A stretch of DNA of 14,849 nt from Bugula neritina (GCA_964035545.1 CAXIUT010000240.1:1-14849), one strand, 5' to 3'; counted from the stretch's first letter, positions 1-14,849 are shown. The notes: generated by a model not told the origin, from the letters alone. Program-made: numbers and translations.

Positions 1-93
1 CCCAACCCCAACCCCAACCCCAACCCCAACCCCAACCCCAACCCCAACCCCAACCCCAACCCCAACCCCAACCCCAACCCCAACCCCAACCCC
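1..93 (+). repeat. Left telomere, (CCCCAA)n
   Basis: Perfect C4A2 hexamer array at the contig start, in the orientation expected for a 5' chromosome end; same repeat unit as Tetrahymena telomeres. Confidence 0.97.
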
Positions 94-403
94 TTGATGC
101 ATTATTATGATTTGAATATATTTTATTCAAGATTATTCATGAGTAATTATTTGATAAATATTGTCAGTAATCAATTTTCTATCGAACAGTTTATCGGCTT
201 TTACTTTTATTTTGACGAAATATAAAATTATCTTTAGAATATCATCCTTTTCAGTGCATAGAAGAAACTAAACAAAAAATTTCAACCTGAGTCAAGTTAG
301 ATATCTTAAACTTAAAAAGATGAGGTCAATAGAGTTTTTATTGATATTATTTAGTTAATTTAAGTAAGATTTTTTTATTGATAAAGGATTCACAAATCAT
401 TGA

Positions 404-1342
<939 letters not shown>

Positions 1343-2798
1343 TTAATAACCTCCATAGTTTTAAATCAAAACTTCTGATCAATTCTTACAATTTCAAACT
1401 TTTGGTCAGTATTACTCAGAATATATATATTAAATATCATATTTCAAATCATATCACTCTTAAACCTCTACAATACAGCAATTACTCATATCAACATTGA
1501 AGAATATATCCTCCATTCATCAGCAGAAGTCACTGTAAAGAAAGGAAATCAAGGAAATCTGACCATTTCTTACGTAGAGCAGCATTTTACCAGAATTATT
1601 CAGATTCATCAACATAAACATCTCAAAGAAAAGAAATCAATAGGTTTATTGCAGCTATTCAAATAGAAAAAGATATAAAATATCAATCTCAATTGATTTT
1701 ATTTATTTATTCTATCTAATAATTGAATATTCATCGTTATTCTTTGATTTCCTCCTTAAGCTTTGATATAAATCACAAATACTAAAAGCAAATCTTCAAA
1801 AGTAATAGTTATTCTGTTTAATGTTTATTTTTAATTATTTAAAAGACTTTTATTAAAGATAGAGAAGCACCCATACACTCTGATATTGTTTATCAGTTTT
1901 GGAAAAGCTATCTATCCTCTACATACGACTAACAAGCAATGCTCTTACTTCTATCAAAGTTATGTACTATCTCGACTCAGTTAAAGCAAATCAAACTTTT
2001 TTATACATCCATTAAAACCTATCAAACTGTCTCAAAACTTCGTAAAAACTTCTAGAAAAGCAAGAATAAGGTTTGTTTCAGGAAAAGAGGTGGGAATAAA
2101 ATCTGATCTTTCTTTTTTAAGACTTTGACTGATCATCTTGATTTTTTGGTTTGACATCTTTTTAGCATAATTTCTTCATAAACTCAACATCTTAGAACTC
2201 TTTCCTTCTTGCTAAAAAGAATGAATCATAAATCACTAAAAACATGTTAAGAGTACCTAATAGATCAGTTATTGCTATCATTTTTAAATCATAAAAATAT
2301 CATTTCATAATAAGGTTAAATAAATATCATAAGATTCTCTTCAATATAAACAAATTGTATAAAAACAAAGAATGCTAGTTTCTAGTTTTCAACAAGATTT
2401 TCGATACATGTTTCGCTCCCAATAAGATGAAATATTTTAAATTTAAGCTTCAAATAAAATGATACTTTTGATTTTGATTAAAATCTTCATATAAGATCGA
2501 TATCATCATCATAAGAATCTATAAATAAGATCAATGCTATCCCTAACTTCTCAATAAAATAATTAATACATCATTAGACATTTTAGGAGTTATATTTACT
2601 TTGGTTTTATGTTTCGTTCTTACTATTTAAAGATTATCAATATATTAGAAAAGCTTTAATATAATTATCTCGAAGGATTGTCAAAAAGATATTAAAAATA
2701 GGACAATCTGGTTCTTGATAACTTTGTGATATATGTCTTTGAGGTATTGAATAAAATATTGATTAAATTAAATAAGTTAATTATAATAATTACCACAA

Positions 2799-3011
2799 AT
2801 GGCTAAAGATAAGCATCACTCATCCAAGAACCAAAACCACAAAAACCACCAAAACGGAATCCAAAAGCCAAAAAGACAGAGATTCCCATCTCTCAAAGGA
2901 GTCAATCAACGCTTCTTAAGAAACAGAAGAAGAGCTCTTCAGAATGATCCCAACATCAAAAGAAACAGAGCACTCCAAAAAAGAGTAGACGCCTATAAAG
3001 CCCAAGCATGA
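2799..3011 (+). CDS. RPL29: 60S ribosomal protein L29 (eL29)
   Basis: MAKDKHHSSKNQNHKNHQNGIQKPKRQRFPSLKGVNQRFLRN matches the eL29 signature MAKSKNHT.HNQ..K.H.NGIKKP...RY.SLKGVD.KFLRN; TGA stop. Confidence 0.95.
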   Translation: MAKDKHHSSKNQNHKNHQNGIQKPKRQRFPSLKGVNQRFLRNRRRALQNDPNIKRNRALQKRVDAYKAQA

Positions 3012-3202
3012 TACATAGTCTATTTAAATCCATCAATCTTCAAATATCAATAATAAAACAACCTCAATCATTTGAACCATCCTCTCACCTGCCATCTCCA
3101 GAACATTTTACTAACCACTCAAAATTTGATAAAATGATCTCATAATGATATCATTGCTTTCTGATCGTATTTGAATAATATTTGATTATTTATATGTTTA
3201 AC

Positions 3203-4156
3203 ATGAACGCAGAACGTTCATCTCTCCGCAAGAAACCACCACCAGAAACATCGATACGCGACCGCTACACCACCCAATACAACAACTACATTGACAGATA
3301 ATTTACCTATAACACTTTGACCCTCATAAAAAAAATAACATAAAATGGATAAAAATAACCATACATGTACGGCATTCCTCTCCAAAAAATAATAATCCAA
3401 ATAGTAAAAACAATGATGATGAACTAGTTATAAACTTTATTCTTTGGCTCAACTCTTCAAGAAATGAAATGGAAAATAAGCGATCCCTGTCTAAACGAAT
3501 ACCTCAACTAAACTACAGATATCACGCCGCATATATAGAAAGATACATAAAGTAAAAAAGTACAATTTTCATTATTACTTATCTCGTATATAGTCAAAAT
3601 CTATCTCAATTAGGACAATAGTGTCATTGATTATAAAATTAGATAAATTGTTAAAAATGGATTCGATAGAATGTACCAGACTTGGGTCAGTAGAGTATCT
3701 AAACATTTTCAATTCAATCCTAAAAATATGAATAGAATTTTCAAAGAATATGATCATCAACATGAATAACATCAGGTTTAAATTGTTGACTATAATTATC
3801 TAGTATCATAGTTTTTCCAGCATGATACCAATCCCTATGAAGATCAAATACTTCCTTTGTATAAATAATAATCTCCAGATAAAAATATATTCAAAGAATC
3901 AGTCAATCACTACAAAAATATATCGACTGCTTTTCAACCTACAAGAAATGGCATTTAAGATCTACCCATGGAAGAAGAATAAGAGATACCTGTAAAAAGT
4001 TAAAGAATTTATAGTTCAAGATTGAAAAGAAATGGATCAGAGATAGGTTTTGTAAGAAAGGAATCGAATAATTAGTTTTTTGGAGGATAAAATTATAAAA
4101 AAGGAATATTTGGACTCGATATTCTCAGAAATTCGTCATCGAGAATTGAAGATTGA
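3203..4156 (+). CDS. Hypothetical protein, 317 aa (TAR=Glu)
   Basis: ATG-to-TGA frame of 318 codons with no internal TGA. It has a globular-looking N-terminal half (MMMNELETLFFG...WKI...LLLISYIVKIYLNED...FNPKNMNRIFKEY) and an acidic, low-complexity tail. No family recognised with confidence. Confidence 0.8.
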
Positions 4157-4263
4157 TTGTAACTTCTTTTATCAATATATTTACTTTACCATATTAATAT
4201 AGTATTTGAAGAATAAATCACATTTTATTTCAAGTTATTAATAAACATAATAATATCTAATCC

Positions 4264-4876
4264 ATGAGCGCTCCAGCATAAGAATAGGCATTGCCCGCAC
4301 CTCCAACCAAACCACCCATCAACGTACCTCCTCTTCTACTCAGAAAAAATAACTCTTCGCAGATATTGTAGCCTTCTTCTCCATCATTAGTACCAAAATA
4401 TCTATCTAGATTCATACTTCTTCATATCTTTAACCCTCCACTTCAGCATCTTTGAAAGCCAACTCGGTCTTAAACTCGATGATTACTCACTCATTATCTT
4501 CCTCCACCTCTCATATACTTTCTTCATACTAGTCCTGCATATATTCTCAAAAGTACTTACTAAATTCACACCTGATAAAGAAAATCCTGTCGCTAAATAC
4601 CTCTCAGAAGAAGTCAGTCTCTCCTTACTAACCATGCTTATCATCAGTGGAATCTATATTAGCGTACACTCTTTTGTTAGATAAATATCTCTGGAAGAAT
4701 TTTGTCATATAGCTCTATGGCTTTGGATAGGAGAGATGTCAAGAGTTTTAGGATCTTTTGTGGGTCAAGCTACAGGAATTGATAGCTTTTCGTATTGGGG
4801 AAAAAGCGTTGAAATAATTCTCATCGCTGGAGGAGTGCTAGAAGTTATTGGATTTGGAGTCTTTGTGCTGTTTTGA
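4264..4876 (+). CDS. Multipass membrane protein, 190 aa, two 20-nt introns
   Basis: Removing 4324-4343 and 4390-4409 gives a continuous frame MSAPAEEEALP...VLEVIGFGVFVLF* with about 5 hydrophobic segments. Confidence 0.8.
4324..4343 (+). other. 20-nt spliceosomal intron
   Basis: gtacctcctcttctactcag; needed to restore the frame. Confidence 0.75.
4390..4409 (+). other. 20-nt spliceosomal intron
   Basis: gtaccaaaatatctatctag; needed to restore the frame. Confidence 0.75.
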
Positions 4877-5170
4877 TTCTTCTACATTTAACCTTTCAAT
4901 TACTGATATTCAACTAATACAAATAGTAGTGTATTGTACTTTTAAAGACTTATTTTAAAATATTAAAGCAACTTCAAACAAGAAAATAAATTTTAAAATA
5001 ATTTTATTTTCTTCATCTTTAATATGTATATTAAGATAATAAAGCGACAAAATTGATTTTATTATTGTATTAAATGAAAGAAACTAAGAATAACAACTTA
5101 TTGATGTCAATTTATCTCTAACAATATTTCTTTATCTAAGCAATCATAATAATAACTAATCTCAACCATA

Positions 5171-5637
5171 ATGTTTAAACATAAGATCATTGTTAGTACT
5201 TCATCTCTTTTTTAGAATAATTACGTCACAGATAAAAAGAAAGAAAGTACTATGGACTTGACAACCTTAAAACTATCTATCATCTGCCAAAATAAAATGA
5301 AGAAATCCTAGATACAGATGAACCAGATATCGAATCTAACTCTATCTATGAACAGTACTCCTTCTCTTAAGTTCCACAAGAGACCCCAGTCTTCTACAAT
5401 CCTTATGATTTCTTTGATTTTGAGAAAGAATAATAACCAGAACCTGAGTCAGAAAGAATAATCTAAATAAATAACCTTTATAAAGCAAAAATGTAAGAAG
5501 AAATTCATAGACCAGAATCATAAAGAAAAGTAAAATTCAATCATGTGATAAAAATGGTTGATTTTGATGATTAAAAAGAAGTTGTTTATCTCGGAAAATA
5601 AAGATAAAAATAGGTAACTTATAATATCCATTTTTGA
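5171..5637 (+). CDS. Acidic protein, 148 aa, paralogue A of a tandem pair; RVxF-like motif RKVKF
   Basis: After removing intron 5196-5215 it reads MFKHKIIVKELRH...YGLDNLKTIYHLP...FSEVPQE...YNPYDFFD...RKVKF...IHF*; colinear with 6336-6826. Confidence 0.85.
5196..5215 (+). other. 20-nt spliceosomal intron
   Basis: gtacttcatctcttttttag; same position (after ATC ATT GTT A) as the intron in the paralogue. Confidence 0.85.
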
Positions 5638-5791
5638 CTAAAATGGCTGTGATATTATGAAACTCTTATCTATATCTAATCATCATCTCGAATATCAATA
5701 AAATAACTCATTTACTAAAAAAACAAAAGAAGAAACGTATTATTAACAAAGTCACTCAAATAATCACTAAATTAAGCAAATCGATGATGTT

Positions 5792-6121
5792 TCAGATCAT
5801 TTTGTTATTAATCATCAATTTGAATATTTTCTATATAAATTTACTGAAATCTATTTCCTTCATCTCAAGATTTATCACCTTATTATACCTCCAACTTTTC
5901 AAAAACAGTACCGACAGAACAGACGCCCTCTCTTTATTTCTTTTGCTATTGTGTTTTTTATCAAATATAAGATTAAAAATTAGATATTAAACCCTCTGAT
6001 TACTTGATTAATTAATCTGGTTTTGTTAATTGATCATAGCATCAGAACCAGACTAACATCTTTCTAAAATATTATTCACAAGGATACACATATAAAGTAT
6101 CTACTCATTTGTACTATTCAT
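5792..6121 (-). CDS. Possible small hypothetical protein, 109 aa
   Basis: ATG-to-TGA frame MNSTNEEILYMCILVNNIL...KLMINNKMI* fills the gap between the paralogues. No motif, and frames of this length can arise by chance when only TGA is a stop. Confidence 0.3.
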
Positions 6122-6335
6122 AAGGATTCAATAGATTTCTCTTATTGTTTGATAAAAAGTTTTATCATATATACATCATGATCTTCTTTCTCTCTATTTC
6201 AATAATTCTATCAATAAAACTGAAGCTAGACGATGATAGCATTGAATAATAACCATAAATAACAAAAAAGATAATTTATAAGTTGAAATAGTATGATAAA
6301 TACTAACTTTTTGGATGTTGGTTTATAATAATTAA

Positions 6336-6826
6336 ATGTTCAAAAGAAAAATCATTGTTAGTACATTTTTTTCTATTTAGAATCCTACAAACATAAACTC
6401 AAACTTAGATAATCCTATGGACTTGATAGATTCGATACAATTTATCGCTTTCCCAACAGAAATGCAGAAGAAGACTAAAAAGTTTAAACCATAGATTCTC
6501 TTTAAAATACTGAAGAGGAATAAAGCTCAAATTAATCAGATTTCTGTTTCTCAGAGATGGATCAAGAGTCACTCAATCTTTACTGTCCATATGACCTTTT
6601 TGATCATGAATTTGAGTAAAACTTTTAAGAGCCACTACCAAATAAAATAAACGAAATAAATACAGCCTATCAAGCTTCTATGGCTTGTTCAAGTTAGCCA
6701 GAAAGATTAGAGAAAAAATCAGTGTGTTTTGAAGAAAACTATTTATTCAAAACATATAAGAAAGAATCTTAGGTGATTTTAATCAAAAACTAGGAAGAAA
6801 TAAAAGAAAAAACACATTTCTTTTGA
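6336..6826 (+). CDS. Acidic protein, 156 aa, paralogue B of a tandem pair; RVxF-like motif KSVCF
   Basis: After removing intron 6361-6380 it reads MFKRKIIVKSYKH...YGLDRFDTIYRFP...FSEMDQE...YCPYDLFD...KKSVCF...THFF*. Confidence 0.85.
6361..6380 (+). other. 20-nt spliceosomal intron
   Basis: gtacatttttttctatttag; position conserved with 5196-5215. Confidence 0.85.
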
Positions 6827-7342
6827 AAAAATAACCATATATATTGATAGTATATACTTTTAATTTATCAGAATTATTTTTACCTATTTAAGTTTTAATA
6901 TTCTTGTTCAGAGATAAAACGAAATCAGTGACGAATATCTCAGTTATAAAAGACTTTAAAAGATAAAAGCTTGATGGAAAGTCAATAAAATCGTCTTTTA
7001 GGAGTTTATTAAAGGTGTTCATCTTCTTATTTTCATTAAAATTGTTTGAACTTTTGGTTCTAAAGTGGCTTACTGAGTCCATGTTATAAGTTATAATTGA
7101 AAACTTCAAAAAATATTCAAAATATAAATGAATATAATATGATCAAAAAATCGTTTTTGATAACACTGGCTTGTGATAAAGCTTTTAAAACCTAAAATAT
7201 GATTTTATATTTTTCTTCAAGGTGTTTTTTTTTCCCAAAAACTTGGAAAAATATCATTAAGATGTAATGGCATCTGTAATCTTCACCATAAGATCGATAA
7301 ACAAACTAAAATGATATGAAAAAATCATAATTAAAGTTCTTT

Positions 7343-8223
7343 TCAGGTCCAATTACACAACCAACTCTTTGGCTTTATCACCCTGTTTTTACTATTCTTC
7401 TCAGCTTCTTTAACAATCTTTAGCAGCAACTGCAAAGCATAGAAGTTAACCTCCTAGTTATTCTCCATCTTAGTAGTGACCATTTGGGATTGCTTCAAAG
7501 TCAACTTTCCATTACTTTTTACTGGTTCCATAAAATGGTAAATATCCATACAAACTATATCATCTCTTTTAATCTATAACTAAGAATGCAAAGATGTTAT
7601 CCTCTTCTCTATTTTCTTCCAGCTCTCTCCCTTCCGGTCAAAGCTACCTATCAACACCAACATCGTCTTCACACCTCGCTCGAACATATCTCCCCGCAAA
7701 AACTTCAAATAATTCATCTCATCCGATGATACCTCCATCATTGAATTTATCACTATCAGACAAACTTTAGCCTTAAAACGGGAATCTAACTAAGAAGTCT
7801 ATCCGATACAATGCCCCAAATTTCCCTCTACATATTCGAGTGCCCGCTTATATCTTGAACTTGGTTTCTCTTAAGTCAGCAACTCAATGCCTTGTACTCC
7901 AAATTTTTGTCCCACTTCTCGCAATTCTTTCATACCTTCTACTTGCCACTTTGCTCCCTTCTTTATTTCCACAATACTTGCTTGTCCCTTAGTATTCGTT
8001 CCCCATCCTTGTGACCCATTTAACGCAAACTGAAGAGTTCTAAATACCAAGATCTTTACTTGAGGAAGTTGGTTTTTCCTACTTTAGGTGGTCCAACTAC
8101 AAGGAAAGTACACTGTGATGGCATATTTTATCCCTGTGCCAATCTAAAATCAAATTAGCGAATATCTTTTCGAAGATCTATGTTATGTGAATAATAAAAT
8201 TGTTCTTGATAATTTTTCTCCAT
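7343..8223 (-). CDS. Divergent P-loop NTPase-fold protein, 286 aa (possibly IFI44-like)
   Basis: Walker A FLVVGPPKVGKT; continuous frame to TGA after removing intron 8040-8059. Family assignment is by eye only. Confidence 0.8.
8040..8059 (-). other. 20-nt spliceosomal intron
   Basis: gtaaagatcttggtatttag just after the P-loop; restores the frame. Confidence 0.8.
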
Positions 8224-8267
8224 CAAATATAAAACTATAAATCCCCGTATAATAGTTAGAAATACTA

Positions 8268-8958
8268 TCATGAAAACCTAGTCTTTATACCTCTAAAAAA
8301 ATCTTTAAAACTATTTGAACAAGATGATCCTCCCTATGCAGGCACATTTAAATGAACTCCACTCTGCTCTTCATTTTTTACCTTAGATAAACAGTCTTTA
8401 ATCAAATATTCTATAGCATCATGGACTCCTTCGCCTGTTTTAGCACTTGTCTAGAAATACGGGATCGATAACTCTTCTGAAAGAGTTTTAGCTAGTTATG
8501 CAGGAACTGAACGTTCAGAAGGCATATCTTTTTTATTACCTATCAATATTTGTCCACAATTTTAATGTGATTTTTACTTGATTTCAGGCACCCAGAATTT
8601 ATCCACCTCTAAATCATCATAAAATTACTATCAAAGCTGACTTTATCAGTCAAATCAAAAAGAACTAATACCCCATCAGCCTTTTGAAAATAATTTTTAG
8701 TCAAAGAAAAAAACTTTTACTGTCCAGCTGTATCCCAAATACAAACGGTTACCTCCTGTCCATTGATTTTAATCACTTTTTTTTATAAAGTGAGACCTAG
8801 AGTCGGAGTATAGAACTGATTAAAAGATGCTACTTTGTAATAATAGTACTCTAACCTTAAATAAAACGACGGATCAGACTTGTCTTCCCTGAATTAGGAT
8901 TGCCTATCACGATTAAATCTATCTTTGCCTTAGCTGGAACCTCCAATTCTTACGACAT
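8268..8958 (-). CDS. Rab-family small GTPase, about 216 aa, two introns, no C-terminal prenylation cysteines
   Basis: G1 GNPNSGKTS, G2 YTPTLG, G3 WDTAGQEKF, G4 GNKKD, G5 ETSAK; introns 8830-8849 and 8609-8628. Confidence 0.93.
8609..8628 (-). other. 20-nt spliceosomal intron
   Basis: gtaattttatgatgatttag; splicing restores SFDKVDKFW. Confidence 0.9.
8830..8849 (-). other. 20-nt spliceosomal intron (alternative in-frame donor at 8855 would give 26 nt)
   Basis: gtactattattacaaagtag joins G1 and G2 in frame. The GTAC donor matches the other introns; a GTTA donor 6 nt upstream is also frame-compatible. Confidence 0.7.
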
Positions 8959-9153
8959 TAATTATAAATTATCAAATTACACGCAGATGATTTTAGTTTT
9001 AAATTAAGTACAAACTAGAAAATAAAATCAAGAATTAATCCTCAAGAAATAGATAAAACAAATCAATATTATCGATCAATAGTAATATTTGATACTTATT
9101 TATTTTATAAATATTGTATTAACCTCTTTATTTCTTTAATATGTTTTGGATGA

Positions 9154-9230
9154 TTGGGGTTGGGGTTGGGGTTGGGGTTGGGGTTGGGGTTGGGGTTGGG
9201 GTTGGGGTTGGGGTTGGGGTTGGGGTTGGG
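9154..9230 (+). repeat. Internal (TTGGGG)n telomeric tract, 77 nt
   Basis: Perfect T2G4 array flanked by unique sequence on both sides. Confidence 0.95.
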
Positions 9231-9349
9231 ATAAACGTTATAGATTGTTTTGTTTTCATTCATAGAAGACAATAATAATAATATAACTCAATAATGCGAT
9301 CTTTCTTTATATTTTTTGTCAATTTCATATAAATAAACAATAATCATCA

Positions 9350-9841
9350 ATGCTAACACAACTAAACTAACTCGAACCCATCCCTCAAGTCCTAAAACAA
9401 AAAGTATTTCTCTTCAACCATCGCCTCTCCCCAAAATTAACCATACACAACAAAAACTCATAAAAAAATAACACCAAATACATAAATTCCTCAGATACCT
9501 CTCTACCTCAAGCAATCATGACAAAAAATACAAATCACTAACCTCTAGACAGACTATATCTGTAGAGAAAAAGAAACAAAATCATCAATACCCTCAAAAA
9601 TAACTCTCTCTTAGATACACCAACACATCATTAATAAAAAATAGCCAGTTCCAGATCTCTAGCATAGCAAAAACCTCTTCATCTCCTAGAATGCTAAAAA
9701 ATACGTAAAACAATCGAACCCATAAGAAAAAGACCAAATATCAACATCAACCTCAAAAGAATAATAAAAAATAGAAAACCAAAAGGAATCTTTTCCTGCA
9801 ATTAGTACAAATAACTTTTACAATAAGTCAGAAAAGGATGA
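9350..9841 (+). CDS. Hypothetical basic protein, 163 aa
   Basis: ATG-to-TGA frame MLTQLNELEPIPQVLKQKVFLF...ELLQEVRKG* ending 65 nt before the convergent TFIIS stop. The region is G-poor, so TGA is rare by chance. Confidence 0.5.
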
Positions 9842-9906
9842 ATATATCAGTATATAAAATAAATAAAAATGATTAATAAAATAAGATAATAGAGAATGAA
9901 TCATTA

Positions 9907-10779
9907 TCAATCTTTCCAAGTTTTATCACAATTATTGCACCTCATAAATCTTGTCATTGGTTCATCAGCAGCCCGAATCTGTCTCATGTCCTCCATAAAA
10001 GCCTTCTTAGCACGACAAAACTTGCAAGTCTCTTTAGCATCTTTGTTGAGTTTCCTCTTCATTTCTTCATATAATCCACTTCTGCTCTTCTCTATTCTTT
10101 CCTTCTGCAACTTGTCCATTTTCTTCACAATATCTTTGTCCAAAAACACTTCAAATTCATCTCGAGAAAGCTCTTTAGGAGTTATTTTCCCTGCTAAAAT
10201 TTTTTACTTAGCCTCTTTTGAATTCGAATTCAGGAATTTGAAGGCAATAGATTAAACTCTACCCTGAATATCTCTTATTAAATGACTAGCTTTTTTGTGT
10301 TATCTGCTTTACTATCTGTGCTAGATCTAAGTAAAGAGTTCTTTAATAATCTGAACCAACTTGATGTTTTTCTCTGCCTCCTTAAAACCATATATAAAAC
10401 CCCTGTATAACATCTTCAAACATTCAGTTTCATCCTCATTCTTTCCAATACATAATTTGTCAGGGAACTAGATGTAGGCAAGTGTTTGTCCTTTCTTTAC
10501 TTTCTTCAAATCAAATTTTTCATCTCTCTTGGCTTTATCTTTCATCGACCTCAGTTTTTTCTTGGCATTCAAACAAGGTCTAAACCAAGACTGCTAAATA
10601 TCATTCTCATCTGCTCTTACTATTTATCTGTGAAAAGAAGATACTGCATCTTCTAACTAAAATACATCCTCATCTCTGATCTTCTTAGCTTTATCAAGTA
10701 TCGACAAAATAACCAAAATCTATTTCCCTTTTTGCTTCCAATTTTTCAAAACCTTTACTTACTCGACCATATTCAGCAT
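9907..10779 (-). CDS. TFIIS: Transcription elongation factor TFIIS-like, 290 aa
   Basis: C-terminal Zn ribbon CKFC...QIRAADEPMTRFMRCNNCDKTWK, preceded by domain II-like KILAGKITPKEL; intronless frame from ATG at 10779 with TAR=Glu. Confidence 0.88.
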
Positions 10780-10991
10780 AAGTCAAATTATTATTGTATT
10801 TATAATAGTCAAATGCTCTCTATTTAAAATCAATAGTTATTTCTATAAGTATCTTTCAACACCATCATCATCAATCATATCAAGAATTAAAATCTATTAC
10901 CACTTGATCATCCTAATATAATCAATAAATATCGATAACTAAATAACTCAAAGATAATTAATATTTAAATTTAGATAATAACTCTATAATC

Positions 10992-11774
10992 ATGTCGTAA
11001 ACTTCCAGCTACAGCTCAGATTAAAGCTACGGATGGATCAGTTGGTTCTGCAACCTAGAAGACCATCAATTCTTTTGCAGAGTTGATTAGTAATACATCA
11101 AAGATAGCTTCAACCTCTATGGACTCAAAAATATGTTCGACCACTACAAGTATCATCCATCTAATCCAGTGACGCACTAGAAATGATACTAAGACCAGAT
11201 CCTCCTTAAGATTAATAACTATAAGACTAAAGGTATCAGCAACAATACTCAGATATCTGTCAATATACCAAGAAGCCACCGATATTTATGGACTTATCCA
11301 TGCTCGTTACATCGTCAGTCCAAGAGGTCTAGCTATAATGAAATAAAAATACCTCAAAGGATCATTTGGAGTCTGCCCACGAGTCCTTTGCGACAGACAA
11401 CCCACTCTACCTATCGGCATGAGTGAATAAATCAGAACATCTAGGGTCAAAATATTTTGTCCTAAATGCCAAGAAGTCTACATTCCCAAAAAGAAATGTC
11501 ATGATATCGATGGTGCCTATTTCGGTTGCTCTTTTCCCAATATTCTGTTATTAGTACATAGAATGATATTCAGATCTACCCATAATTAGTACCTAAAAAT
11601 GGAGAGACACAGTATGTTCCTAAAATATATGGATTTAGAGTCTACGGACGCAAAGGTTCAAAATACTAGAAAAAGTAAGATAAAAAAGAATTAACATATT
11701 ACACACAGTAATAACTTAAAAAAATAAAAACAAGAAACGATCCTAAAGATAAAAACGAAAGATAACTAAAATGA
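10992..11774 (+). CDS. CKB: Casein kinase II regulatory (beta) subunit, 240 aa, three 20-nt introns
   Basis: WISWFC...VDEEYIKDSFNLYGL; YGLIHARYI; FGVCPRVLC; KIFCPKCQEVY; IDGAYFG; YVPKIYGFRV. Confidence 0.97.
11150..11169 (+). other. 20-nt spliceosomal intron
   Basis: gtatcatccatctaatccag; restores HYNDALEMIL. Confidence 0.9.
11233..11252 (+). other. 20-nt spliceosomal intron
   Basis: gtatcagcaacaatactcag; restores LEDERYLSIYQEA. Confidence 0.9.
11554..11573 (+). other. 20-nt spliceosomal intron
   Basis: gtacatagaatgatattcag; restores FPNILLLIYPEL. Confidence 0.9.
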
Positions 11775-11987
11775 TACTATTAATATAAAAAAAAATATTT
11801 TCAATAACTAAAACCATTTGAAAAATATAAATATAAAAGAATAAATATACTTATCTTAATATTGAAAATATTTTGATCAACTTTTATATTAATATTAGTA
11901 ATAGTATCATATAGATATCAATTCAACTGATAAACACTAAATTTCAGAGCCTAACATATTTCAAGTTCTAATCTCTAGATTATAAAA

Positions 11988-13219
11988 ATGTTAGCATTCA
12001 AAAACAAAGAGAAAATAGCCAAAATAAGAATAAAAGTCAACACATGGCACAAAGATTCTCATAGTCTATATGACTATTAATCAAATAAAGTCATTGAAAT
12101 CAAAAAATAATTTAGTCTTACAACCAAATGGGTCAATATCTACAGAAGAAAAAGTAGTAAAAATTGTTTCTAACAAAGTTGTGAAATATAAATGGTAGAT
12201 TCGGAAACTTAAAACAAAGCAAAACTTTCAAATTTTGATTTTATTGCTCATTGCTAACTATAACTGATCAAACCATTCGGAGTCAGGTTATCATTAGTCA
12301 GTCCTTCAGTGTATAAAGACAGCATCAAATAATAAAACAATTAAAAATAAAATACGAATGAATCTATCGATATTTTAGAACAAAAATAATAAAAACCATA
12401 CTTTATCGTCAATAGAAACATGAACCAATATAATCTTAATGCAGGATACTAACTATGTACTTTTTGTATTATTCAGATCCAGGAATGACCCTCAAATTAG
12501 GCAGAATAAACTACATGGTTACCTAATACTACAATGGCACTTCTAAAAAGATCAAACCTTTGTCAAGAAATCATAATTATTTTAACAAAGATGTCTTCAA
12601 ATGCGATCAACTAACTTAAAAAAATAGAAATCAATGCAAAATATGTTTAGATTAAAAATAATAAGAAGAAAACTTCCTCTTCAATCCCTGCAAATGCAAC
12701 GGCTCATGCGGAACAGTACACTTCTAATGCCTAACATAATGGATACAAATCAAAATAAAAAAAGATGTAGTAGGAGGCACCAAACATTACAACCTCACGA
12801 AATTCGAATGCTAAGTCTGCAAAAGTGAACTACCAGGTTACATATAAATCAAAACCATATATGGAGATATAATCAACAAAGAACTAATAACCATCGACCG
12901 ACCCTAAGAAGGAAAATATATCATTTTAGAAGGAGCATGCTAAAAATAAAAAAATATAATGATTATCCAGAACCCTCCTTAAACTGGTATCAAATTAGGT
13001 CGAGGACATGAATGCTAAATAAGAATAGCTGATATTTCAGTATCAAGAAAACACGCGTACATCAAAAGCACTAGAGATCAATTTTTTGTTCATGATAACA
13101 ATTCTAAATTTGGAACTTTAGTTCGACAAGATAAGATGGCATTTTAGTTAAAGAAATAATTTGAGAAGAAATCTATACAAATCGGAAGAAGTATACTTTA
13201 ATTTGCAATAATGAAATGA
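11988..13219 (+). CDS. RING-CH (RINGv, C4HC3) plus FHA domain protein, 403 aa; putative E3 ligase
   Basis: CKICLD...PCKCNGSCGTVHFECLTEWI...CEVCK, then FHA LGRGHECEIRIADISVSRKHA...DNNSKFGTLV; intron 12457-12476. Confidence 0.93.
12457..12476 (+). other. 20-nt spliceosomal intron
   Basis: gtactttttgtattattcag; restores GYELYPGMTLKLGR. Confidence 0.88.
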
Positions 13220-13283
13220 TCAACTACTATTATCATATTACTTTTTACTTATAAAAAACTAATTAAAGTTATACTCAATTATA

Positions 13284-14255
13284 TCATGATTTCAAAATCC
13301 TAATTTTAGGTTTCTTTTTCATAATGATCTCATGTCTTTGCTTTCCTATCATCTAGATAGGTTCAATTATCTTCTAGTTAGTGTATTCTACTATTCCTGA
13401 TCTGTTGGAAATGTCTATCTGCTACCAAGCTCCATAAGAATTACCTTTATGTTGAACTTTCTAAAAAGGAACCTTCTTTTAATGCACTTTGATCTTTACT
13501 TATTATTTTAATTATTCCTGAATACTCCTCCTCGAAGGAGGTTCACATTTTTTACCTTCTATTTTATTCAACTTTTGATTCGCTTACAATTTGTTCTAAG
13601 ATAAATTTCTTTTATTATTTCTATATTTTTTCAACCTTTCTCTCTAAATTTCCATTCTAATCGAAGCTTTACTAAGCAAAGCATCCAATTTTTATAATCT
13701 ATTTGGAGCTAGAAAAGATATTTAATCCTTTAAAGAATGATTCCCTTCATTCTTATTTTCTATTTTCTACTCTTTAGTAATATTTACTACATAGTTATTA
13801 CCAATTTATATTTTACTAACTTTCTTTATCGAATAATTATGAACCATAGGAAGCGGTCTTTTCTCTTAAGAAGTCTTAATTTTCCTATCAATATCCAATG
13901 ATCTAAAAAGCTATTGATCTTTATCACAATATAAACTCTCTTTCGAAAGATCAGTGATCATCTTTTTAACAGGTTTCCTTTTCTGATAAATATACACCCT
14001 TGATCGATTAACAAAAGAATCCACATTGCTCTTATGATTCAACTTCATGTTCTAATCATTAAACGAATAATCAATTTGACTCTGACAGTTTCTTTGCATA
14101 TGTTGATATTATGACTATGACGACTTAGTATGATTAAATTGAGGTCTGCTTCGTGATCTTTACTTTCTATAAGATACTGTTTTAGTTTTTAATGCTTTTT
14201 ATTCTCTTGTTGTTATTGTACTGAATAAATGATCTCGCTATTTTTTGTTCTTCAT
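13284..14255 (-). CDS. Hypothetical Lys-rich protein, 323 aa
   Basis: Uninterrupted ATG-to-TGA frame of 324 codons with TAR=Glu (MKNKKERDHLFST...KKKPKIRILKS*), converging on the RING-CH/FHA gene with a 64-nt gap. Confidence 0.75.
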
Positions 14256-14309
14256 CGAGGATAATAAAATAATTATTCCTCTTATTATAACAAAATTGAT
14301 TATTCTTCA

Positions 14310-14517
<208 letters not shown>

Positions 14518-14663
14518 GGGGTTGGGGTTGGGGTTGGGGTTGGGGTTGGGGTTGGGGTTGGGGTTGGGGTTGGGGTTGGGGTTGGGGTTGGGGGGTTGGG
14601 GTTGGGGTTGGGGTTGGGGTTGGGGTTGGGGTTGGGGTTGGGGTTGGGGGGTTGGGGTTGGGG
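14518..14663 (+). repeat. Internal/subterminal (TTGGGG)n tract, 146 nt, with two G6 variants
   Basis: T2G4 array with G6 runs at 14590-14595 and 14646-14651, followed by 111 nt of unique sequence. Confidence 0.93.
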
Positions 14664-14774
14664 ATAATAGATTGATTTTGAATATAAAATATTTTTCTAA
14701 AGAATAATCTGGGATTAATACTATTTGAATAAATAAAATAAGACTAAATATAAAATAATCAATCAATCAATTTA

Positions 14775-14849
14775 GGGGTTGGGGTTGGGGTTGGGGTTGG
14801 GGTTGGGGTTGGGGTTGGGGTTGGGGTTGGGGTTGGGGTTGGGGTTGGG
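14775..14849 (+). repeat. Right telomere, (TTGGGG)n
   Basis: Perfect T2G4 array at the contig end, in the orientation expected for a 3' end. Confidence 0.97.

Follow-up and report, generated by a model that had tools for sequence, protein, structure and literature searches.

Can the spliceosomal introns of a genome be held to a single length and, if so, what holds them there? The question is raised by a stretch of 14,849 nucleotides (nt) from Bugula neritina (GCA_964035545.1 CAXIUT010000240.1:1-14849), referred to here as the window, whose content is ciliate macronuclear DNA with C4A2 and G4T2 telomere tracts and whose reading frames are closed by TGA alone as stop codon. An interpretation made without database searches, the sequence-only reading, had placed 11 introns in the window, each exactly 20 nt long, beginning with GTA, ending with YAG and in 10 cases carrying an A six nt from the 3' end (position -6). 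All 11 twenty-mers were recovered exactly where it had put them, those at 8040, 8609 and 8830 being on the minus strand. These segments are best explained as conventional spliceosomal introns (U2-type, GT-AG) in a ciliate that uses a peritrich-type genetic code, essentially all of one length, 20 nt, with internal spacings that would be fixed by the spliceosome; we assign this reading a probability of roughly 0.7. That the segments are real introns is very probable, and comparison of sequences indicates that the single 20-nt length is genuine and common to relatives of the source organism.

The segments share far more than their length. GT, extended to GTA, opens all 11 (GTAC in seven, GTAT in two, GTAA in two) and YAG closes all 11 (TAG in six, CAG in five), while the A at -6 is present in every segment except 5196-5215, GTACTTCATCTCTTTTTTAG. 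The combined motif, GTA-N11-A-N2-YAG, is matched 11 times in the window where 2.88 +/- 1.73 matches are expected, and 0 of 200 shuffles attain 11. Ten of these matches are introns of the sequence-only reading; the other, 11462-11481 on the minus strand, runs antisense within an exon of the gene for casein kinase II beta (CK2-beta). Equivalent motifs of 18, 19, 21 and 22 nt are matched 6, 2, 1 and 5 times, respectively, where about 3 are expected at each length, so the motif excess inside the window is specific to 20 nt. When all 11 segments are spliced out, TGA-terminated frames result in seven genes, with products of 148-403 amino acids (aa). When an intron is retained, the next in-frame TGA lies 10-290 codons downstream (median about 43). 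The suggestion that a length of 3n+2 makes retention always shift the frame, which would matter where one stop codon is available, is correct as arithmetic, but its protective value is weak, since retention rarely gives an early stop over such distances.

Junctions were evaluated gene by gene, using stop-free protein pieces. Removal of 20 nt restores collinearity with homologues in CK2-beta, in the Rab-like gene (at 8609), in a pair of tandem paralogues, B and C, and in a RINGv-FHA gene, G. The CK2-beta coding sequence (CDS; 10992-11774, plus strand) contains introns at 11150..11169 and 11233..11252, both phase 2, and at 11554..11573, phase 0, and its pieces match Pfam CK_II_beta (PF01214) in order. 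Against human CK2-beta (1jwh_C), the piece upstream of intron 1 and the piece downstream of intron 2 both align with an offset of 6, meaning that exactly 40 nt are removed over the two introns. Around intron 3, the offset is 5 on both sides (173 pairs with 168; 181-198 with 176-193), which likewise requires removal of exactly 20 nt.

The Rab-like GTPase gene, D2 (CDS 8268-8958, minus strand), has two phase 1 introns. At intron 2, 8609..8628, a related locus, L003, supplies an uninterrupted paralogue with which the spliced product aligns gap-free across the junction; relative to the Pfam Ras profile, the piece before this intron and the piece ending at it have the same offset, 15. At intron 1, 8830..8849, the profile offset moves from 13 to 15 and the protein is two residues longer than the profile. 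A 26-nt solution, GTTAGA...TAG, would drop the two extra residues, and homology leaves both lengths possible; the GTA, A-at-(-6) and YAG motif favours 20 nt.

Genes B (CDS 5171-5637, plus strand; intron 5196..5215, phase 1, the sole intron lacking A at -6) and C (CDS 6336-6826, plus strand; intron 6361..6380) carry their introns at the same site and in the same phase, although the intron sequences have diverged. Their spliced frames are 37% identical (E-value 1.6e-26), as opposed to a score of only 29.6 bits when unspliced.

Gene G, matched by Pfam RINGv and FHA, has its intron at 12457..12476 (plus strand, phase 1). The sequence-only reading began this gene at about 12420; the start is in fact at 11988, 432 nt upstream, giving a CDS of 11988-13219 and a protein of 403 aa. 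Its orthologue in another related locus, L006:12677-13901, is 65% identical in the tblastn hit and shares 239 of 395 residues in the full spliced alignment. There, a 20-nt intron of different sequence, GTACACTTTACCCCACTCAG, occupies the same codon position between conserved flanks. At L006 12846-12865, the orthologue carries another 20-nt intron, GTAAACCACCCTCTACTCAG; the window gene has no intron at that point and about eight more codons. From the alignment, an intron has been gained or lost between these relatives.

For the remaining segments, the evidence is frame and motif. Gene A (CDS 4264-4876, plus strand), a predicted membrane protein whose pieces match no Pfam family, contains introns at 4324..4343 (phase 0, GTACCTCCTCTTCTACTCAG) and 4390..4409 (phase 1, GTACCAAAATATCTATCTAG), and its ATG exon reaches the 154-codon downstream frame only when both are removed. 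No other frame-keeping GT..AG solution exists within +/-30 nt of the 4324 intron. Gene D1 (CDS about 7343-8124, minus strand), which encodes a P-loop-like protein with no Pfam match, has a phase 2 intron at 8040..8059 and would meet a TGA 43 codons on if the intron were retained.

The sequence-only reading had itself cautioned that 20-nt solutions were favoured once the pattern emerged, and a length scan free of that preference was made on related DNA. A search with the L29 ribosomal protein gene of the window (2799-3008) brought up 56 related metagenome loci at 72-85% identity, amounting to 350 kb, and the figures that follow refer to these relatives. GTA..YAG candidates number 324 at 20 nt versus about 225 at other lengths; with A at -6 required as well, the numbers are 177 versus about 75. 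A stricter motif with a U-rich branch context gives 86 candidates at 20 nt versus 2-23 elsewhere, against a background of about 14, with the neighbouring lengths of 19, 21 and 22 nt represented by 21, 16 and 14 candidates. A motif-free test agrees. It took in all GT..AG segments between 10 and 120 nt other than those of 3n length and counted a segment when its excision brings together two coding-like frames, free of TGA, that are otherwise broken apart; 91 segments are found at 20 nt versus about 40 at each other length. Among unique frame-restoring 20-mers, A stands at -6 in 28 of the 31 that start with GTA and in 10 of the 36 others. Twenty nt is thus the sole enriched length among GT..AG candidates of 10-120 nt in the relatives, and the fear of a self-fulfilling preference is largely answered. 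The frame test applied to the window alone, with relaxed thresholds, gave no discrimination.

The peak at 20 nt appears in most locus groups, at GC contents from 0.31 to 0.46, and motif and length recur together in unrelated genes of many relatives. The relatives' 3' splice site is NAG (AAG and GAG as well as YAG) rather than strictly YAG. To illustrate, a canonical Rab paralogue has a 20-nt intron at L003:5546-5565 (minus strand) with an AAG end (GTAAACATACAAATATTAAG). No excess is seen at 15-17 nt in the relatives. Two other lines were rejected. Candidates of 22 nt seemed enriched in A at position 15, but this signal, considered as a second intron class, lacks a U-rich context, disappears under the stricter motif and is taken as coding periodicity. 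An attempt to call introns where conserved tblastx segments switch frame gave too much noise in AT-rich DNA and was replaced by the scans described above.

From these patterns, we infer that the segments are removed from RNA, which residue serves as branch point, and that the spliceosome, not selection alone, sets their length. The putative anatomy begins with a 5' GUA, frequently as GUAC or GUAA, and continues with some 10 U-rich but unconstrained bases, a yUAy-like element and a terminal NN-YAG. The A of the yUAy-like element, at position 15 of the intron (-6), would be the branch point, leaving a lariat loop of 15 nt and a tail of 5 nt. Such an intron may be recognised as a single unit, at or near the steric minimum of this lineage's spliceosome, in which case the spacings from the 5' splice site to the branch and from the branch to the 3' end would both be held fixed. 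A stronger version is a two-sided molecular ruler that accepts only 15 nt to the branch A plus 5 nt to the 3' end and that evolved independently of the heterotrich ciliates. The ruler itself and convergence with heterotrichs are each plausible, but the combined proposal is tentative, and we would wager somewhat against it. If it were true, intron length itself would be a recognition signal, and variants differing by one nucleotide would fail to splice.

One such variant exists in DNA. Contigs from runs X1, X3, X6 and X7 were compared over 3200-9150, and in one X1 contig (depth 62.9 of 190.4) an additional T follows 5207, within a T-run, and turns the 5196 intron into a 21-nt segment. An allele, a paralogue or a gene copy in decay could account for it. 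The DNA contigs span both spacers and introns, and two of the runs have the 20-mers with no joined form reported; intact 20-mers in DNA contigs, together with this lack of a joined form, imply that removal does not occur at the DNA level. Word shares of 0.79 and 0.58 were considered as a sign of spliced RNA and rejected as such, being attributable to about 1% strain divergence plus patchy coverage. Among close relatives, neither cDNA-like contigs nor intron presence-absence differences in the form of 20-nt alignment gaps were found. As separate observations, run X2, from another study, has the CK2-beta stretch (share 0.79) and is absent from the listed holders of 4200-9150, and an X1 contig extends 773 nt beyond 9150.

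Several points weigh against introns of one fixed length. All runs found with the locus are DNA. The related loci represent several organisms, so the length distribution is a pooled one, and one 62-kb locus group, which includes the most similar RPL29, has little 20-nt excess. Introns longer than 120 nt, as well as rare introns of 3n length, fall outside the frame test. Within the window, the 5196 intron departs from the motif at -6 and has the 21-nt DNA variant in X1, and the introns at 4324, 4390 and 8040, along with the exact length of the one at 8830, are assigned by frame and motif.

The explanation that survives best beside the preferred one accepts the introns as real but regards 20 nt as merely the shortest length that can be processed, with deletion bias and genome compaction driving introns down to this floor while longer ones would still splice. 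We consider it unlikely, yet it is the most serious competitor. The genome is indeed very compact, with multi-gene mini-chromosomes of 5-9 kb and short spacers, and PMC13685798 makes the case for an equilibrium of this kind in heterotrich introns of 15 bp. A 21-nt allele of the 5196 intron would also fit, as would the example of Paramecium, whose intron lengths are scattered over several values about an optimum. On the other hand, such a floor predicts a Paramecium-like tail at 21-25 nt, and no such tail is seen under the stricter motif in the relatives, where the peak is one nucleotide wide across GC contents of 0.31-0.46. The intron present in L006 but not in the window is also exactly 20 nt.

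A uniform length that is partly an artefact of how solutions were chosen, in which the introns are real but several are truly 17, 23 or 26 nt, or in which 3n introns were missed, is considerably less probable and would surprise us. In its favour, the 26-nt GT..AG at 8830 is closer to canonical Rab spacing, and the four assignments by frame and motif leave some room for it. Offsets and alignment nevertheless fix 20 nt at 11554 and 8609 and 40 nt at 11150 plus 11233. Alternative GT..AG solutions are mostly without the GTA, A-at-(-6) and YAG motif; the sole competing solution that fits it, a 26-nt version at 12457, was rejected because it creates an in-frame TGA. The sequence-only reading also warned that 3n introns without a TGA would be invisible to it; such introns give no frame shift and escape frame tests, but motif scans at 18, 21 and 24 nt show no excess in the relatives, nor do scans of the window, with none at 18 or 21 nt there, which suggests that multiple-of-3 introns with these signals are rare. 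Finally, that the 20-mers are not introns at all but programmed ribosomal frameshift or bypass sites, leftovers resembling internal eliminated sequences, or pseudogene lesions is highly improbable: ribosomal frameshifting is known in other ciliates (Euplotes), but the GT and AG ends are invariant and accompanied by GTA, A at -6 and YAG, motif and length recur across unrelated genes of many relatives, the DNA contigs retain the segments with no joined form, and the genes are conserved and intact after splicing.

The assignment to a peritrich-code ciliate follows from how TAA and TAG are read. In the Rab-like gene, the sequence DTAGQ-[TAA]-KF has TAA at the Glu position of its homologues, and VD-[TAG][TAA]-YI in CK2-beta lines up with what we take to be human VDEDYI (the alignments to PDB chains end at ..EVD). 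Across genes G and K, window TAA pairs with orthologue Glu 39 times, Gln 16 times and Asp 12 times, and TAG with Glu 12 times and Gln 3 times, so that Gln is a sizeable minority beside the mainly Glu pairings. Judged by these alignments, the code is of the peritrich type, with UAR mostly Glu and UGA the sole stop. Reassignment of UAR to Glu is cited for Campanella (PMC10553269). PL0344, in which UAA is Lys and UAG is Glu, was rejected as the organism on account of its median intron length of 57 bp. No suppressor tRNA was detected by ARAGORN, and an Rfam search of the window plus 263 kb of related loci returned tRNAs only, with no spliceosomal small nuclear RNA. Gene K (3203-4156, plus strand) encodes 317 aa, has no Pfam match and no intron, and is found beside the gene for L29, at 46-55% identity, in eight or more related loci, indicating that local gene order is conserved.

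Telomere tracts divide the window. A C4A2 tract spans 1-94, and G4T2 tracts lie at 9160-9230, 14518-14664 and 14775-14849. Positions 1-9230 look like a complete 9.2-kb multi-gene mini-chromosome with C4A2 at the left and G4T2 at the right. Beyond 9230 follow two pieces, 9231-14664 and 14665-14849, each with a G4T2 end and unchanged polarity and without a left C4A2. The window does not look like one chromosome; its layout could reflect assembly chimerism, alternative fragmentation or internal telomere-like tracts. An (AAAT)n microsatellite of about 190 nt (14330-14517) immediately adjoins a G4T2 telomere tract. Near the left end, a polyubiquitin gene of four units (404-1315, minus strand) closes with ..LRLRG followed by TGA. 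The stop stands in place of Gly76 (GGT TGA as opposed to GGT GGA in the other units), and the last unit would be without the conjugating C-terminal Gly-Gly.

That metagenome contigs from many public samples so widely contain the 20-nt class suggests a clade-level trait. In practice, introns of 20 nt are thrown out by standard aligners and gene finders, and gene models for peritrich-code ciliates, as well as for environmental contigs such as the 56 loci used here, will be frameshifted unless this class is allowed.

Single-length introns are rare, and in the literature consulted the one well-described ciliate case is that of the heterotrichs, whose introns measure 15-16 nt. Stentor introns are 15 nt long in 92.8% of cases, with an A at position 10, and 16-nt introns have the A at 11 (PMC9505925). 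The comparison with Stentor drawn by the sequence-only reading is apt, the branch A there standing at -6, the position of the putative branch A here (PMC9505925). In Blepharisma undulans, 79% of introns are 15 nt. The Blepharisma consensus is GTAAWWTTTATWTAG (PMC13685798). Both heterotrichs resemble the present case in near-single length, GTA start, A at -6 (which would here too leave a 5-nt tail), a U/A-rich interior and a TAG/YAG end. They differ in length and in the distance from 5' splice site to branch, which is 10-11 nt as opposed to a putative 15 here, which would make the loop 5 nt longer in the window. Moreover, 15 is a multiple of three whereas 20 is 3n+2. Two branching factors, Cwc25 and Isy1, are altered in Stentor. 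The window introns display the GTA and the A at -6 of the heterotrich type, but all are 20 nt instead of 15 or 16.

Paramecium and the peritrichs both belong to the class Oligohymenophorea. Paramecium introns range over 15-100 nt around a median of 24-25 nt, their interquartile range being 23-26 nt (PMC12862383), and multiple-of-3 lengths are disfavoured (PMC13685798). They are similar in being very short GT-AG introns and different in that lengths are spread. The relatives of the window do not have such a spread around a median of about 25 nt; their peak is at 20 nt, with 19 and 21-26 nt at background. Zhou et al. 2026 (PMC13685798) describe the intron-length distributions of the peritrichs Campanella sinica, Epistylis hentscheli and Vorticella campanula as narrow, like those of Paramecium; the main text gives no intron length, motif or branch position for them. 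By the UAR-to-Glu code, these peritrichs are probably the organism group of the window, and the 20-nt class is possibly already visible in the figures of that study. No study explicitly describing a 20-nt intron class in peritrichs came up in a literature search.

The nucleomorph of Bigelowiella natans offers a further parallel, with introns of 18-21 nt, mostly 19. Near-uniform, ultra-short spliceosomal introns in a compacted genome are common to both, but B. natans is in another eukaryotic supergroup, its nucleomorph is a relict nucleus and its introns have several lengths. Fixed-length tiny introns as such are already known from heterotrichs. A second, apparently independent lineage that appears to share the branch-to-3' spacing of heterotrichs but to have a loop longer by 5 nt would provide a natural comparison, through which one could ask whether steric limits, regulator loss or selection sets the minimal and permitted geometry of the spliceosome.

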